Below are positions 2,961-11,317 of a stretch of DNA of 60,346 nucleotides, piece after piece. This DNA comes from Chara braunii (lineage: Eukaryota > Plantae > Charophyceae): the NCBI GenBank assembly GCA_003427395.1, contig BFEA01000002.1, forward strand, positions 1,556,685 to 1,617,030, given 5' to 3'. A model generated the notes under the pieces. The model searched no databases. It was not told the DNA's origin and saw nothing but the letters and a program-made list of their open reading frames with translations. A program made the position numbers and the translations under genes. How positions within the stretch are numbered: the stretch's first letter is position 1; each line of letters opens with the position of its first letter.

Positions 2961-3694
2961 GAAGGATAGTAGGAAGGGAGAACAAGGGGATATATGTGCG
3001 AGCGGAAGGGGTGCCAGACTATGGTACACTGTCTTCATTCTCTTCGGGAGGTCAGACTTGCATAAACATGTTCAGGGCGTACTCACACTATTTCACACCA
3101 GCACTGTCTTAAATGTATCTGACTGCATTTAAGGCCCAACGGGGATGAATCTGACTGCAATTACGTCCAGAAATAAGTAAGAAAAATTCCTACTGTATGT
3201 TCTGAAACTGATGTTGCTGTCGGCGTTGTGAGGCAGAGGCATTTTATGAGTCGTCTGTGAGCACTTCCTGAGGCTGGATTCACACCTCTGGGGCACAATC
3301 CCACTTCCAGAGAGGATTGAATGTGGACGTGTTTGAGGAGACGTGCAGAACATCGCAATTCGGCAGGGCATAGGCCGAGGAGGAAGAAACAAGAAGAGCA
3401 GTAAACTTAAGGTAAAAAGAGAGGGAGAAAGGCGGCTTTCCGATTCCATCATGTAGAAGGGGCCTCACACAAAAAATGCATCCTGCCAGTGGGGTTTCAC
3501 CGCATCAAGTGACCAGTTTCCCAACTTCGCCCATAATTTTTTCCGATAGTCTTTTGAAAAATCTATGATCCTAGTTTTGGTGTTGACTGGTTGAGCCCCG
3601 ACTGTAATTTTGTTGACCATAGTCGTTCGAAAATTTATCATAATTCTTTTGGTCTTGACGGGCTGAGCCCCCCGCCTTTAAACGGGCCGCGGAT

Positions 3695-6280
3695 ATGGAT
3701 CATACTCCAAGTCGTCACGGTAACGGTAATGGTTGGGGAGAGAGCGATGGAGAAGTGGAATGTGGGAGAGGAGAGGGAGTGGTACCACACACTTTTATGG
3801 CTTGCATCATGCAAGGTCAAAGGCTTGGTGCAGCATATTACGACCATTCGACCGGGGAGGTGTTTGTCCTGGAGTCGTGGGAAGACCCAGGCGAAGCTTA
3901 TCCCAGCCTTCAATTGCTTAAGCTTCAGGCCCAGCCACAAGTAATCTACACGAGTACCAAATCTGATGTACCCTTCTTTGAGGCACTGAGGAGGAGTTTG
4001 ACCAAGGATGGACCTGAGTTCGAAGTCAAGACGATGAAGAGCTCTGACTTCAGCTTGGACCAAGCGAAAACAAGGTTGGCCTACTTGAGGGTGAGGGGGA
4101 TGCCGGACAACATCTCTGAAGTGGAACGGCTGCATCTGATAAATTCCATGATAAATTTGCGGCTAGAAGTTCAAGTTCGAGCAGCTGGGGGTCTTATCAT
4201 GGGCCTCCATCGGGACTTGATTATGGACACCATCGGAGCATCCAGTGCTGGTGCTGTGGATGTCGAAAAGCTTGCGGAAATCAGTCTTGATGGAATGTTG
4301 AAGGTGGACCCCACCACACTTGATGCGCTTCAGATCTTTCAACCAGAACGACACCCAAGCGCTATGGGAGTCGGAAGACCAAAGGAGGGACTCTCGCTTT
4401 TCGGCTTGCTGGACAAGTGCTCGACGAGGCAGGGCCGTAAACTGCTGCGGCTTTGGTTTCTTCGCCCGATCGTCGACGTGGATCGGATTGAAGACAGACT
4501 TGACACAATTGAATGGCTTTCGCGCTCGAGGGACCTCATCGATGCGCTGAAAAAGGGGCTGCGATGCATCGAGTGCGTGCCACGAATCCTTAAGAAGTTC
4601 ACCTGCTGCGGGTACGCTTCGACGGTTAAAGATTGGTCGCTTCTTGTGCAGAGCTTGTCGAGCATGTGCAACCTGAAAGACGTGCTCAGTATAGCCTTCT
4701 CTTCGAGGCATGTTGGTGGTAATCATGAAAACGAATCACTCGGAAATCTGTCCCCGGTCCAGAAGGTGTTGGAAGTCGTGAATGAGGATCTCATTTACGT
4801 CATCGAGCTTGTGAACAAGATTATCGACTTCGATCAGGAATTCTTTGATGGAAAGCGGGCCCTTGTTCGTTACCATCTCAGCGAGCAGCTCGATGACGTC
4901 AAACGGAAATACAATGGGTTGGTGGATATTCTCGATGGGGCAACAAGGCGAGAGATGACAAGGATTTTGGAAAGTGTGGGACCGTTGATTCCGCACCAGA
5001 CACTGGCATCGGGAGCGATTGTGTTCACGCCTGAGATGGGATATTCTCTGCGTTTTGAGGGGGCAAGGCTCCCGGACTCCGTCTTGGAGATTCTATCCGA
5101 CCTGCGGCTCATCATTGAGGGGGAAGACCAGAATGGTCGAGGAGTGCATTACCAGACTGCTTTGACACTTCAGATGAACAAAGTTGTTGGTGACCTCTAC
5201 AATGTGATCACCGATATGGAAGGTGAAATTATTCGGGGGCTGGAAGCACGGGTACTTGGCTTTACCGACGTCCTTCGAAAGGCTGCAGATGCGATGGCAG
5301 AACTGGACTGCGTTGTTTCTTTGAGTGAAGCAGCTCTTGAACATAATTTCAAACGCCCTAGACTTGTCAGAGGCTCCGACGTGATGAAGATAAAGAATGG
5401 CAGACATCCATTGCAGGAGCTCGTTGTGAATACCTTCATCCCAAACAACACACACGTGGACGAAAACAAGGGCAGGGTTAACATAATCACCGGCCCCAAC
5501 TGTTCTGGGAAGAGTGTGTACGCGAAACAGGTTGCGATGATTACTTTCATGGCACATATTGGGAGTTTCGTACCCGCAGACGAGTGTATTCTGGGACTGT
5601 GCGACAGGATATTCACCAGAATTTTAAGTAAAGAAACAGCACTGTTACCGCAGTCAACCTTCATGATCGACCTCAACCAAATTGCGGTTATGCTACGGCA
5701 TGCGACTTCAAAATCACTGTGCATCATCGACGAGTTCGGCAAAGGCACGTTGGCCTCGGATGGGATCGGCCTGCTTTGCGCAACAATTCAGCACTTGATG
5801 TCGAGTGCAACGCCTCCGAAGGTTTTCGCGTGCACCCATTACACGGAACTCCGGAACGAGGAGTACCTCCCAAGATCGGAGCAGATCGAATTCTACACAA
5901 TGTGCATCCTTGAGGCGAAAGGCAAGCGACCGGCGGTCCCAGCAGATGAGCGGAGTGCAGAAAAACTTTCCGCTGCAGAAGGTATGAGCTCAGAAAGCGA
6001 CCTGGATCGGCAAATCACATTTCTGTACAAGCTCGTTCCTGGATACAGCACCTCGAGTTTTGGAATTCATTGTGCCCAGCTAGCGAACGTCCATGCGGCG
6101 ATTCTAAAGAGGGCAGAAGAATTGCTGAAGCATGAGAGAGAGGGTCAGCCCGTTTGTCGCTCAGAGGATATGCTGCAGCATTTGAGCACGACCAGGACGT
6201 GTAAAGAAGTCGGAGAGGCATTTCTGAAGCTCAGCAACAGTGCTGACGCTGTCTCTGTCTTCCTGCAAGAGATGGTGTAG
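3695..6280 (+). CDS. MSH5: MutS homolog 5 (meiotic crossover MutS-gamma subunit), single-exon ORF of 861 aa
   Basis: Motifs seen: KEGLSLFGLLDKC...GRKLLRLWFLRP, GRHPLQE, Walker A IITGPNCSGKS, STFMIDLNQ, Walker B IIDEFGKGT (MSH5-type rather than DELGRGT), THY, and the HTH region FLYKLVPG...SSFGIHCAQLA. There is no N-terminal mismatch-binding domain. Confidence 0.93.
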   Translation: MDHTPSRHGNGNGWGESDGEVECGRGEGVVPHTFMACIMQGQRLGAAYYDHSTGEVFVLESWEDPGEAYPSLQLLKLQAQPQVIYTSTKSDVPFFEALRRSLTKDGPEFEVKTMKSSDFSLDQAKTRLAYLRVRGMPDNISEVERLHLINSMINLRLEVQVRAAGGLIMGLHRDLIMDTIGASSAGAVDVEKLAEISLDGMLKVDPTTLDALQIFQPERHPSAMGVGRPKEGLSLFGLLDKCSTRQGRKLLRLWFLRPIVDVDRIEDRLDTIEWLSRSRDLIDALKKGLRCIECVPRILKKFTCCGYASTVKDWSLLVQSLSSMCNLKDVLSIAFSSRHVGGNHENESLGNLSPVQKVLEVVNEDLIYVIELVNKIIDFDQEFFDGKRALVRYHLSEQLDDVKRKYNGLVDILDGATRREMTRILESVGPLIPHQTLASGAIVFTPEMGYSLRFEGARLPDSVLEILSDLRLIIEGEDQNGRGVHYQTALTLQMNKVVGDLYNVITDMEGEIIRGLEARVLGFTDVLRKAADAMAELDCVVSLSEAALEHNFKRPRLVRGSDVMKIKNGRHPLQELVVNTFIPNNTHVDENKGRVNIITGPNCSGKSVYAKQVAMITFMAHIGSFVPADECILGLCDRIFTRILSKETALLPQSTFMIDLNQIAVMLRHATSKSLCIIDEFGKGTLASDGIGLLCATIQHLMSSATPPKVFACTHYTELRNEEYLPRSEQIEFYTMCILEAKGKRPAVPADERSAEKLSAAEGMSSESDLDRQITFLYKLVPGYSTSSFGIHCAQLANVHAAILKRAEELLKHEREGQPVCRSEDMLQHLSTTRTCKEVGEAFLKLSNSADAVSVFLQEMV

Positions 6281-6395
6281 GAGAATTGATGGCATGCTCA
6301 CCACACTCGATCTCGAGGGCTTCCTTGGATACATCTCATCATGGTAATCACGGCGAGGAACTTCCTACAGACCAGGTGTGAGTAGGCCTTCGGCC

Positions 6396-6471
6396 CTCCA
6401 ACATCACATCTTGCAGAAAGGCATGAACAGCGTCAGCACTGTTGTGTATTTTCTCTTCATTTCAGAAATGC
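6396..6471 (-). repeat. Short inverted copy of the MSH5 stop-codon region (~6219-6284)
   Basis: ACAGCGTCAGCACTGTTG and the flanking CTTGCAG/CTCC and TTCAGAAATGC are reverse complements of the last MSH5 codons and the stop region. Confidence 0.8.
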
Positions 6472-7195
6472 TGCCAAATGCAAGCTTTGCTCACGGGAGA
6501 AAGAAAAGATGCATTACATGCATGTAGCAATTGGTCAGAAGCACTCGACCGTAGCACAGTTATCGTACTCACACTGGTAAGTTTCTGGATGAATCTGGCA
6601 GCGTTCACAGCAAGCGGCCTGATCGACAAATCACGTTCTTGTGCAAAAGCTTGTTCCTGGATACAGCACCTCCAGTTTTGGCATTGATTGTGACCGGCTA
6701 CGGAACGTCGCTGCAGCGATCCTAAGGAGGGAAAAAGAAGCGTTGAAGTGTGAGAGCGAGGTTCGGCCTGTTTGTGCTTCCAAGAATTTGCTGCAGCATT
6801 TTACCTCTACACCTCTTGGTCTCAGTAAAATGCTGCAGCAAATCCGTGGAACCACAAACAGGCCGACCCTCGCTCTCACACTTCAGCACTTCTTTTTTTC
6901 CCCTCTTTAGAATCACTGCAGAGACGTTCACTAGCTGGGTACACTGAATTCCAAAACTGGAGGTGCTGTATCCAGGAACAAGCTTTTGCACAAGAATGTG
7001 ATTTGCCGATCAGGCCTCTTGCTGTGAACGCTGCCAGATTCATCCAGAAAATTACCAGTGTGAATAAGATAATTGTGCTACGGTCGAATGCTTCTGAAGT
7101 TCTGATCAATTGCTACATGCATGCAATGCATCTTTTCTTTCTCCCGTGAGCGAAGCTTGCAATTGGCAGCATTTTCTGAAATGAAGAGAAAGTAC
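6446..7195. repeat. Long inverted repeat (arms ~6446-6804 and 6825-7195, 20-nt loop); the inner half of each arm is MSH5-derived
   Basis: The arms are reverse complements throughout, including a perfect 46-bp pairing of 6636-6681 with 6951-6996. Both arms translate to KLVPGYSTSSFGI...LLQHF, matching MSH5 nt ~6001-6183. Confidence 0.95.
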
Positions 7196-7640
7196 TCAAA
7201 ATCATTCAACTTATGAAAACTCGGCATTGCTAATCGTTGAAGTATAGCCCGACTATGTTACTGTGTTGAGAAAGCTGTTGAGTGGTGTCTGTTCTTCTGG
7301 GGGCTTGCCAGTAGAACTTAGAATTTGTACTTGGTCTAAAAGGTACATACTTAGTCACGGACCCTTCTGATATTTCTACGATGCAGATTACTATGGTATC
7401 TCCTACAACAGCTATTGCACTAGCTAAACTTGTAAAAAAATTGTAATTACAGTAAGTAGCTCCCCCCAAAAAATTGTCCCCATGGCATCACATACCCGGG
7501 GAAAAGACCCTGCAGGTCTGAGAGTATAGAACCCGCTGATAATCTTGTTTCTTTTGTTTTTCAGGATTTGAACTCAGGTCCGGATTTCAACAGTTTGTGA
7601 GTGTACAAACTTATAATCATTTCAATGGGGATCGAGTACC

Positions 7641-7806
7641 TTTCTTTTTTTTTTTTTTTTAATGAAGTGCAACGGCCTTGAGATTATCATCATCCGAGCT
7701 GACTGGCCCTAGGTGGTTCAGACTCTCTCAGTGGAGTTCGAACTCGGGTCTGTGATTCAACAGTTCAGGGGTGTAGCAACTGTGCTAGGTCAGTTGGTGA
7801 GTTCCC
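7641..7806 (-). mobile_element. tRNA-derived SINE
   Basis: On the minus strand there is an A-box-like TAGCACAGTTGCTA (7787-7774), a B-box GAGTTCGAACTCC (7745-7733) and an A-tail at 7641-7660. Related heads occur at ~7561-7611 and ~35105-35185. Confidence 0.65.
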
Positions 7807-8505
7807 TTTTTCTTGTTCCTTGTTGTCTGAGACTCTTTCTTTTTTATTTTTTTTTTCCCTCTTGAGATTTTTCACTTGTTGTTTTTGTTGCCACTTCAGT
7901 AGACCCCTTTCCCTTCTCCCCCCCTCCTTGCCCCCAAAACATGAACTCAAATTATTACTATTATTATATATTATCATTTTAAGAAAAACCTGGGCTCCTC
8001 CTATTCTGGGAAGCAGTAGTCCTGTTCCGTCTCCGCCGGCAAGTCAAACAATGGAACAGGTTATACTCACGCAACGGCGGCAACGCTCCTCCCCATCATG
8101 GTTGAGAGGTCCGCGTGGACAGTATTGATTGCTTCCCTCAGGAAAGGATATACGGTCATATACCACCCCTCACCCCTGCCTAAGTTAGCCTCCTGTACGC
8201 TGTTGCCCTCAATTGGTTTTGCAACTTTGCAGTGCTTGCACTAGTATCTAATTCCCAGTCAAATCCTTTCTTGGTCCATGACAGTCCCCTTTGAAGGTTA
8301 AGCCCCTAGACCCTAGCAGCGGCCTTAATATAAGCACCCTCCGCTTGCAGCCTCTTCTCCTAACCGTCCTCCCATTTGGTATCCTCACCTAACTTCCTCT
8401 GATGCAGCGTCGGGATTCCCTGGGAAATCCTGGGGTGTATATCCTGACATACGGCGAGACCACTGAGTGTACCACTGTACCCTATGGCAGGCCCATCAGC
8501 GCTTA

Positions 8506-8975
8506 GTCAGTTAGAGTGGGAGTTGGCGTCCGTAACCTGTGAGAAGCTGCTGTCAGTTAGAGTGGGAGTTGGCGTCTGTAACCTGTGAGAAGCTGCTGTC
8601 TTGCAATCGGACCTCCTCCCAGTCGTTTGTGTCGGTCCCCGGTGGTGCTGTAACTGTCCAGTAAGGCCTGAGTATTCCGGCGGTTACGGTTCCCTGCTTT
8701 CCCCTGCCCAATACTCTCTGTCTGAAGCCCTCAGTAATCTTCTGCATCTTGGTAGGATCTATTTTGATCAGTTGCTTGGTCTTGCGATTCGACCTCCTCC
8801 CAGTTGTTGTTTGTGTCGGTCCCCAAGTGGTGCTGTAACTGTCCAGTTAAGCCCGAGTATTCCGGCAGTTACGGTTCCCAGCTTTCCCCTGCCCAATACT
8901 CTCTGTCTGAAGCCCTCAGTAATCTCCTCATCTTGGTAGCTAAGGATCTTTTTTGATCAGTTGCTTGGTCTTGGA
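8506..8975 (+). repeat. Two adjacent tandem duplications (~46 bp x2 and ~185 bp x2)
   Basis: GTCAGTTAGAGTGGGAGTTGGCG...GAAGCTGCT occurs twice, then TCTTGCAATCGGACCTCCTCCCAG...GTTGCTTGGTCTTG occurs twice. Confidence 0.9.
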
Positions 8976-11317
8976 TCAGTCCAAGCAAGGGGAAAAAAAA
9001 TAATTCAGACGAATGGTTGTGTTCCAATACTCAGAACGCGAACAGAAGCTTGACATGATTGGACCAGTTGCTGCTCCGGTCATCCTCAGGCAGCACGCCT
9101 CACACCTACCCTTACGGCTTTCCACCTCTCAATCCTACCACTGTGCCATCCTTTTTTTTCTTCTTTTTTTTAATAAAACCCTGCGTCGACAGATAGGAAT
9201 GATGATATAAGAGCATACACTCGTACCTATCTTGCAGGGGGCTCCAGTCTATTGGTGGGGAGTGTTATTTGTTTTACGTTTTTGTGTTCTCTAGAAGCTG
9301 TTTTCTCTAACTTTAAATTTCTGTTTTAGCAAAATAAAATAATAAAAATAAAGTTTAATAAACATTTAAGGAAAAACTAAATCGCCTGCACTAACACAGC
9401 GAGCTGCTGAAGCTGACATCAAATCGTCGTTTTAGACGACTTCTCATACGTGTGCTGAGCGGATCTGGTTTTGTACAGTTGCTGGCCTGTAGTTTTTTTT
9501 TTCCCGGCGTGATTGGAGATTACGAGAGATTGGTTTCCCGGAAAAAAAAATAATAATAAAATTACGAGAGATTGGTTTATGGACAACATATCTGACGGGG
9601 TTGGAGCATGTGATTTGTATGTGCTGGCCGCTGGCATTTGAAGAGTGTTTTATCGTTCTGATGCGTCTCGACCTGCGTGCTGTTGTTGAAGTGTGCCGTG
9701 GCTATTGCAATCAGACTCACTCTCATTCACACTTTTCATGCATCTAAACAGCAGCGCAGCAAACTGGCGACATGCGCCCACTCAAAACTCAGAGATATGG
9801 CATCCAGATACGAGTTCACTTTCAATTGGCTATGGCGACTCAGCGCCCAAACAACTCACAGTTCACATACACCGGATCACCCTGGATATCCCACACGCGA
9901 CGCTCTGAACTCATGCACACACACACTGAACACTAAACTACAGCTATGGCAGCTATGGCAGCTATGGCTGCCGCTACCCTATCGCTATGCTACGCTCCTT
10001 CTCTCTCGCCCACGTCAGCTCCGGGCTCACTGCAGACCTCCTTGCACAAGTCGCTGTGGCAGCGCTGCCGCATGGCTCACGCAGGAATGAATGAATGGCT
10101 GGGCGCTGCCTCTTGATTTATACTTCNGAAACTCGTTGGTCTGCCCTCTTCCATCGGCCCATGGTGCTCACAGTCCCTTATGGTACTTGCTGGACCGGAC
10201 TGGGACTGACTGGACCTTACCGCTGACTGAGTGGGGACTCACTGCTAACCTACCGAGATCGCACTGCAATTGCACTGCAGTTTACTCCACCACTTGACTC
10301 ACCACTTGCCCACTTGCCCACTTGCTGACCTTCTAGAAGTACTACAGCTAAGACTTCTGGAACTCGCTAAGACTTCTATCCTACAGATCTACAGATCGAA
10401 CCCCGACCTACGGACCTATGACAGCCTATCAACTGTTTGCGAACACACAGGTCACAGGTTCAACTCTCGGGGTCTACACAGATACTGTACACAGGTAGGG
10501 CAAGGTCTAGGGATCGAACCCTGGGATCTGCGTCTACTACTGCAAAGAGTTGAAAACCGTTTCACTATAATCGATTCCAAGCAAATGCAGCTGCTGGATT
10601 TGCATCTTTGCGTCCGCAGGTTTTGACGTTTGGTCAGGCTGTATCTAAGCACGTGCTTCTGTTCCGTTCGTCAAAGATGTACTTGGCTGAATTGGAGCAT
10701 GAGATTCTCTTGTGCTGGACTCTTTGTGGGAACCTTTTTCTTCAGGTCGCCTCGCTTGGTTCTGCCTTTTAGGGTCCGTGTATGTTTTCTTCCTGCTATC
10801 TTACGCGATCTGGTTCTTCATTTCAGTTTTCTCCACTGCTTAAGGCATCGCGCCTGTTGCTGCTTTGAGCCAGCTTTCTATTCTGACAGAGAGCAGGTGT
10901 GATTTTCAACTGAATATGGTTGGTTTCAGCTGGAGGACTGAAGATCTGCTTCTAATATGAAAGAGAGTGGGTGTGGCTGACTTTTAAGTGTCTGATCGCT
11001 GCGAATAGGGATTTTGCTCGTTCTTAGATTTGATTCTTTTTTAGAGGAATTGTGTGAGTGAAATGGTCGACGACTGGTAGACTGGAGCCGTTACGGTTCG
11101 TTTTGGTAGGATTTTGGGATTTTTGTTAAAGATTTGGACTGAATCAAGTTGGGATTTTCTCAGTATTTTTCTTGTTTACTACAGGGGCACCGCTTGGCCT
11201 GAGGGTTGAAGGCTTGAGGCATGTTGACCCCAGCAGTTTGCAATGATTTTGCTATTTGATTGATGTATAGCCTTGGGCACTGGGCTTGATTGAAGGGGGG
11301 GAAAAGAAGCTAAATCG

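Follow-up and report, generated by a model that had tools for sequence, protein, structure and literature searches.

The window analysed here, a 60,346-nt stretch of the Chara braunii genome, contains a gene for the meiotic crossover factor MSH5 and, shortly behind it on the same strand, a long inverted repeat. The product of the gene contains the Pfam domains MutS_III (6e-28) and MutS_V (3e-48), and its best relatives were plant and algal MSH5 proteins, to which it is 41-45% identical; the naming of the open reading frame at 3695-6280 as MSH5 is therefore sound. The top 60+ protein matches were all MSH5 proteins bearing MutS5_N, MutS_III and MutS_V domains, and a search of the protein collection returned no MSH5 above 45% identity to the Chara protein. 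The composition of the protein is that by which MSH5 is recognised: MutS domains III and V are present, the mismatch-binding domain I is absent, and the nearest relatives are MSH5 orthologues. Exactly this protein, of 861 aa, is annotated on BFEA01000002.1 of the Chara braunii assembly GCA_003427395.1. The MSH5 genes of land plants have many introns. The Chara gene is one intronless open reading frame, and is annotated likewise; a retrogene may have taken the place of an ancestral gene with introns, or the lineage may simply be poor in introns.

Several smaller features lie on either side of the locus. On the upstream side, a (GA)n/(TC)n microsatellite at 100-1430 borders a long run of N that marks an assembly gap (the window contains 3687 N in total). 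A short, repeated and expressed stretch at 3110-3165 has a word depth of ~255 in X5, a set of contigs from a run whose RNA status was guessed. A recurrent joint, at which the sequence 'goes back 56', was seen there in three RNA runs and one contig, as if another place in the genome held a tandem or rearranged variant of the repeat. On the downstream side, two 45-nt direct repeats (7567-7611 and 7737-7781) are 73% identical and contain a TTCGAACTC motif that by eye resembles a tRNA T-arm, beside a poly-T run at 7645-7660. ARAGORN found no tRNA gene in 7000-9500, and the two repeats therefore look like SINE-like or tRNA-derived fragments. Partly matching RNA reads accumulate at 7388-7435 and at 7737. 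A motif of ~31-34 nt at 8158-8191 occurs in very many transcripts and contigs (X5 word depth ~258) and is short, highly repeated and expressed, with dozens of reads per RNA run that diverge from the window on both sides. Within 8494-8930, a segment of ~190 nt from near 8556 recurs by eye near 8741, and a short tandem duplication with a unit of ~50 nt starting CAGTTAGAGTGGGAG, also found by eye, lies just upstream of that segment. Some 4.6 kb beyond the hairpin, at 11790-11893 (+), is a full-length match to U6 snRNA (74.7 bits, gathering threshold 44, E = 8.5e-18).

The inverted repeat behind MSH5 spans 758 nt (6442-7199) and is made up of blocks of 75-206 nt with 89-95% complementarity, the innermost arms being separated by 20 nt. 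Global alignment of the two arms gave 331 matches, 32 mismatches and 12 gap columns (3 indels), which corresponds to 91% identity over ~363 nt. When folded as RNA, the region 6440-7200 formed a single hairpin with a free energy of -594.8 kcal/mol, compared with a mean of -215.7 for shuffled sequences (z = -62). The locus thus has the extended, dsRNA-capable stem that is expected of a hairpin RNA (hpRNA), with ~360 bp and arms that are 91% identical. The hairpin starts 161-165 nt beyond the MSH5 stop codon. The first-pass annotation of this DNA had described a hairpin of ~750 bp with arms of ~360 bp and a 20-nt loop at 6805-6824, placed ~165 bp downstream of MSH5; every coordinate given there holds, as do the dimensions and the distance from the gene. 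A single further inverted repeat of 60 nt or longer lies in the window, at 21624-21816; it has 66-nt arms that are 83% complementary and a 61-nt spacer.

The same annotation had taken the inner ~185 bp of each arm for a diverged copy of MSH5, and BLAST bore this out. The left arm (6608-6801) aligned to MSH5 5991-6183 with 79% identity (E 1e-41), and the right arm together with the loop (6805-7024) aligned to MSH5 6206-5991 with 80.5% identity (E 1e-52). Homology of the arms to a protein-coding gene, a further property of hpRNA loci, was thus found at 79-83% identity to MSH5 5991-6206. A three-way alignment of MSH5 and both arms contained 149 invariant sites, 23 changes common to the arms and absent from MSH5, 14 changes specific to the left arm, 5 specific to the right arm and 2 sites that differ in all three sequences. 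The arms had been said to share changes that MSH5 lacks; these number 23 substitutions, and they support the accompanying claim that the fold-back arose after the fragment had diverged from the gene. In the predicted fold each arm has the other arm as its partner (91%), and not the MSH5 coding sequence (~80%).

The outer parts of the arms showed no significant nucleotide similarity to MSH5, local alignment to 5700-5990 and to the whole gene being no better than alignment of shuffled sequences. A blastx search gave a 23-bit match to a fern MSH5, next in line to the main match, and the MSH5 profile reaches weakly into the left outer arm. An origin of the outer arms from diverged MSH5 coding sequence or from an intron was nevertheless rejected on the nucleotide alignments, since a true copy in neutrally evolving arms should still be ~80% identical.

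A second inverted piece, B', lies between the gene and the large hairpin and had been overlooked in the first-pass annotation. Its source (6235-6301) comprises the last 15 codons of MSH5, the stop codon and the 21 nt beyond; the inverted repeat formed by 6235-6301 and 6378-6444 is 76% identical (BLAST E = 2e-6), and by blastx B' matches MSH5 aa 845-861. The reverse complement of 6340-6444 and 6805-7060, joined in silico, is collinear with MSH5 5985-6301, interrupted by a single gap of 28 nt at about 6204-6231. The parent segment can be divided into block A (5991-6206) and block B (6235-6301). Identity between A and its copy A' is 176/212 (83%), and between B and B' it is 48/64 (75%), or 36/44 (82%) in the coding part; the similar identity of the two blocks (83% and 75-82%) fits one primary event. 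A spacer of 76 nt (6302-6377) separates the MSH5 segment from its inverted copy. Because B', the loop and the right arm are together collinear with MSH5, the right arm belongs to a tail-to-tail inverted duplication of the last ~315 nt. An inverted partial copy that lies directly behind an intact gene and is collinear with its 3' end is the arrangement of the Lgc1/PAI type of locus. A + strand transcript of 5950-7210 is predicted to fold into two adjacent hairpins, of which the first (hairpin 1, 6234-6445; -108.8 kcal/mol, z = -8.2) appears to be the remnant of the middle of the primary palindrome. All features of the locus are collected in Table 1.

Table 1. Features of the MSH5 locus and of the nested inverted repeat behind it (positions in the window).
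Feature	Position	Strand	Description
MSH5 gene	3695-6280	+	Single uninterrupted 861-aa ORF; parent of all copies
Parent segment of the duplication	5985-6301	+	Last ~97 codons, stop codon and 21 nt of 3' flank; from collinear alignment
Hairpin 1	6234-6445	+	MSH5 coding end pairs with B'; stop codon in the stem
B'	6378-6444	-	Inverted copy of MSH5 6235-6301
Left arm (putative secondary copy)	6442-6804	+	Inverted duplicate of 6825-7199 inside the primary copy
Left arm, outer part	6442-6607		Without MSH5 homology; matches only the DNA beyond the right arm
Left arm, inner part	6608-6804		Matches MSH5 5991-6183
Perfect-pairing stretch	6636-6681	+	46 bp, pairs with 6951-6996; covers the parent's conserved LVPGYSTSSFG coding motif
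Loop	6805-6824	-	Still primary inverted copy, about MSH5 6184-6206; from BLAST and junction view
Inner right arm	6825-7025	-	Primary inverted copy of MSH5 5991-6183
Outer right arm	7026-7199	.	DNA beside the primary copy, origin unassigned; template for the outer left arm

These observations show that the locus was built in two steps. In the first, as the alignment demonstrates, MSH5 5985-6301 (~315 nt) was duplicated in inverted orientation, tail to tail and directly behind the gene, and the remnants of this copy are the present 6378-6444 and 6805-7025. In the second, the alignment shows inverted copying of 6825-7199, which comprises most of the first copy and ~175 nt of neighbouring DNA; the new copy was placed at 6442-6804, inside the first, where it replaced 28 nt. 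Both arms have afterwards decayed as non-coding DNA, with the conserved residues of MSH5 being retained in the gene.

The order of the two steps can be read from the extent of the homologies. The MSH5 homology of the left arm ends 23 nt before that of the right arm; the right arm and the loop reach MSH5 6206 and the left arm only 6183, and the right arm is therefore the older copy. The excess of shared changes (23) over arm-specific ones (14 and 5) places the second duplication well after the first. Jukes-Cantor distances were ~0.19 between the parent and the primary copy and ~0.09 between the arms, which puts the second event roughly halfway through the history of the first, so that it would have occurred after about half of today's divergence had accumulated. 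The outer parts of the arms are 93% identical to each other and the inner parts 89%; as these values do not differ significantly (Fisher P=0.2), the arm appears to have been copied as a single block. At the left junction, the left arm overlaps B' by TTG, a 3-nt microhomology. Errors caused by replication template switching or fold-back priming typically leave a short spacer, microhomology at the junction and the loss of a few bases, and the second step may well have proceeded by such a mechanism. A greater divergence of the left arm from MSH5 than of the right arm (14 versus 5 changes) was considered and rejected as not significant (binomial P=0.064); gene conversion between MSH5 and the right arm is a possible source of this non-significant imbalance.

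The structure of the locus and its local origin in two steps are well supported, and we hold them with high confidence. The reading preferred here goes further, and as a joint statement is given a probability of roughly 0.6: the hairpin is a nested local rearrangement of the MSH5 3' end, not a transposon, and is most likely without a selected regulatory function. The hairpin would accordingly be a real but decaying structural relic, which could produce siRNA.

Of the alternatives, the one that survives best is a regulatory one. The first-pass annotation had proposed a functional hpRNA or proto-miRNA acting on MSH5, in which the hairpin would be transcribed alone or by read-through from MSH5 and then diced. 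Antisense siRNAs from the right arm would cut or repress the MSH5 mRNA at ~6027-6083, or direct chromatin marks to the 3' end of the gene, and MSH5 would be kept off outside the zygote. The arms have a 2-nt frameshift near their start, their shared changes are spread evenly over the three codon positions (7/7/9), and residues that are conserved across MSH5 proteins and kept in the Chara gene are replaced in the arms, differently in each; the arms have therefore decayed as non-coding DNA. As an hpRNA too would lose coding constraint, constraint on pairing and on targeting was examined.

With respect to pairing, the perfect 46-bp match of 6636-6681 with 6951-6996 to which attention had been drawn is present, and ends at 6681 as described. 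Under random placement of 35 differences, a perfect run of at least 46 is expected with P=0.23 over the whole arm; for the inner part alone P=0.035, a restriction that was chosen after seeing the data. The run therefore carries less weight than had been implied, being within chance expectation at this divergence. Mismatches compatible with G:U pairing numbered 8 on either strand, so that no transcribed strand is favoured, and transitions and transversions were equally frequent (16:16).

With respect to targeting, the 20-nt perfect antisense match to MSH5 6035-6054 was also found, ending at 6054, and by a rough calculation is unremarkable for sequences ~80% identical over ~200 nt. None of the 21-mers of either arm is perfectly complementary to MSH5. 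Among those of the right arm, 21/196 have one mismatch and 17/196 have two, so that 38/196 lie within two mismatches, with targets at 6005-6083. Preservation of the arms is highest where they are also most MSH5-like (MSH5 6027-6083), which a targeting model predicts, and which is not statistically unusual. Selection on the 46-bp run, on the 20-nt match to MSH5 or for G:U compensation was rejected, none of the three exceeding chance. The sequence gives no evidence for selection, with one genome providing little power. Membership of a miRNA family was likewise rejected, since Rfam models matched only the tip of the hairpin and far below threshold (mir-8186, 30.6 bits with a gathering threshold of 80; mir-734, 23.4 bits with a gathering threshold of 100). 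With a stem of ~360 bp in place of a short imperfect fold-back that yields one precise miRNA/miRNA* duplex, and with no match to a curated family, the locus does not have the form of a canonical MIRNA gene.

Expression data were available from several sources. Three oligo-dT paired RNA-seq runs, examined to a depth of 0.9-1.7 billion letters per run (6-13% of each), yielded no reads on 3776-7073, a region that takes in almost the whole of MSH5 and the greater part of the hairpin. The absence of reads speaks against a transcribed hpRNA, and is weak evidence given this depth, the unspecified tissues, the fact that MSH5 itself was readless and the failure of poly(A) libraries to capture diced or non-polyadenylated precursors. 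In the probable RNA run X5, one exact contig of 193 nt fell on the left arm (6565-6757, depth 3) and none on MSH5. The Chara braunii genome is under 2 Gb, and the X5 contigs total 198 Mb; by a rough calculation one contig of this length in 1 kb of sequence is within the background of such a set, and it was therefore not counted as specific transcription. Three further probable RNA runs from two further studies contained 10-17% of the words of the stretch, and together with the X5 contig they make low-level transcription of the stretch possible.

If the region were transcribed, its RNA could enter a silencing pathway. The sequence between the MSH5 stop codon and the hairpin contains no clear poly(A) signal, and a transcript that crosses the region, for example by read-through from MSH5, would form one hairpin of ~210 nt and one of ~360 bp. 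Chara braunii is reported to possess AGO and RDR genes (PMC7994812; bioRxiv 10.1101/2022.01.18.476847), and a literature search found no paper reporting small-RNA sequencing in Chara. Given the two hairpins and these genes, a region-crossing transcript would probably be a Dicer substrate, and the 360-bp stem, 91% paired, should be a good one whatever its origin. Transcription of the + strand would place the right arm in antisense orientation to MSH5, and antisense small RNAs would be produced from this arm. Such small RNAs, if made, are more likely to arise as a side effect than to act as a brake that evolved to restrain MSH5.

The case for a functional hpRNA therefore consists of a long and well-paired stem, placed close behind its parent on the same strand, whose right arm would be antisense to MSH5 and near-complementary to it in many 21-mers, in an organism with AGO and RDR genes and with one exact contig on the left arm. 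The origin of young MIR genes from inverted duplication of a target gene is documented in plants, although it is a rare route, the majority of young hairpins having some source other than a gene (bioRxiv 10.1101/2024.07.25.605110). The inverted MSH5 duplication on which the earlier proposal was built stands; the regulatory function that was attached to it has no positive support, there being no reads, no excess conservation of pairing or of the target site, no strand bias in wobble compensation and no perfect 21-mer, and the contig being attributable to background. A functional hpRNA or proto-miRNA is thus considered unlikely, and that the locus is an evolved regulator of MSH5 is, at best, equally doubtful. 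The more specific proposal, that the nested repeat is a working cis-linked generator of hp-siRNAs that silences MSH5 in the haploid vegetative body until zygotic meiosis, is slightly less likely than the hpRNA reading in general.

A second alternative places the hairpin in a foldback or Pack-MULE-type transposon, the outer arms being the terminal inverted repeats (TIRs) of mobile elements, one of which took up a piece of MSH5 and landed beside MSH5 by chance. This would fit the lack of detectable MSH5 homology in the outer ~165-175 nt of each arm. It would not explain why B', the loop and the right arm run collinear with the 3' part of the neighbouring parent, which follows from a local duplication and not from an insertion. 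The flanks (6430-6441 and 7200-7215) share no direct repeat, i.e. there is no target-site duplication, and the supposed TIRs enclose only the 20-nt loop and no unique internal region. Apart from MSH5, the 60-kb window contains no second copy of any part of the structure, which is also its only long hairpin, and the arms draw no partial RNA-read matches although repeats nearby draw many. In searches of low power, a protein word search with an 81-aa open reading frame of the outer arm gave no candidates, and two scans of metagenome contigs gave no match to the outer arms. Neutral capture by a multicopy foldback or Pack-MULE element had been named at first pass as the outcome that would overturn the regulatory proposal. 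From the collinearity, the missing target-site duplication, the lack of a copy in the window, the solitary nature of the hairpin and the absence of a read pile-up, such capture is judged highly improbable.

In a third alternative, both hairpins would be part of the MSH5 mRNA, as a structured 3' UTR or terminator with a cis effect on stability, translation or 3'-end formation and no involvement of small RNAs. Both are on the sense strand right after the open reading frame, and hairpin 1, with its strong fold, encloses the stop codon. The readless RNA-seq runs place no 3' end, however, the sequence evolves like neutral DNA, and long near-perfect dsRNA in an mRNA would normally be diced and not tolerated; there is very little likelihood that this reading is correct. 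An assembly artefact, such as a collapsed repeat or a palindromic read of chimeric origin, for which the N gaps in the scaffold might be cited, is the least credible of all, because the arms differ from each other by 9% (32 sites and 3 indels) and the copies from the parent by 17-25%, where artefactual palindromes are near-identical, and because contigs of four DNA runs contain 82-93% of the 31-mers of the stretch.

The nested local rearrangement of the MSH5 tail thus remains the preferred reading. As it stands, the locus is a clean example of two successive fold-back duplications that turned a gene's 3' end into a long hairpin, and it shows that structures of this kind can endure (9-19% divergence) beside an intact and essential meiotic gene. 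If siRNAs against MSH5 were shown, it would represent a rare and datable first step on the inverted-duplication route to plant small-RNA genes, beside its parent, in an algal lineage near the land plants, and acting on a meiotic crossover factor. A streptophyte alga would then have a self-silencing hairpin right beside the gene concerned, and the locus would be an instance of early MIR-gene birth. The locus is a well-defined first place to examine with small-RNA and 3'-end data from reproductive stages of Chara.

Several known systems resemble the Chara locus in part. In a model reportedly put forward by Allen et al. in 2004, young plant MIR loci arise when the target gene is duplicated in inverted orientation. 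Aha-miR217 is an example of a MIR locus that arose in this way (bioRxiv 10.1101/2024.07.25.605110). Like the Chara hairpin, young plant MIR loci contain a fragment of a coding gene in direct and inverted orientation that forms a long hairpin, and the homology of their arms to the parent extends beyond a single small-RNA site. The Chara locus differs from them in abutting its parent tail to tail, in having been built in two nested steps and in that half of each arm is not derived from the gene. The stem of this candidate locus (~360 bp) is far longer than that of an evolved MIRNA precursor. In Drosophila, hpRNA loci yield endo-siRNAs against the genes from which they derive, and, as in Chara, they are long hairpins from protein-coding germline or meiotic genes with partial complementarity to the parent (PMC10317233). 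What defines the loci in Drosophila is an abundance of Dicer-2-dependent siRNAs together with target de-repression, whereas the Chara locus is a candidate read from its sequence; the lineage and the silencing machinery also differ.

Pack-MULE and foldback elements share with the Chara hairpin the inverted arms with outer parts unrelated to the gene fragment. They differ from it in that the Chara structure lacks both a target-site duplication and unique cargo, is present once in the window, and has a fragment that is collinear with the adjacent parent. Tail-to-tail inverted repeats that silence by read-through dsRNA include rice Lgc1 (glutelin), Arabidopsis PAI1-PAI4 and the soybean CHS I locus. 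The primary event in Chara is of the same form, an intact gene being followed by an inverted partial copy of itself, so that read-through RNA would be self-complementary. The repeats at Lgc1, PAI and CHS I are young and near-identical, and silencing has been demonstrated for them; in Chara, identity between parent and copy is only 75-83%, and the two derived arms now pair more strongly with one another than either does with the gene. Fold-back and template-switch inverted duplications are events of the MMBIR/FoSTeS type. The Chara event is old (~9% diverged) and its mechanism is read from the junction anatomy in one genome, but it resembles them in the inverted copy beside its template, the 20-nt spacer, the TTG microhomology and the 28-nt deletion at the insertion point.
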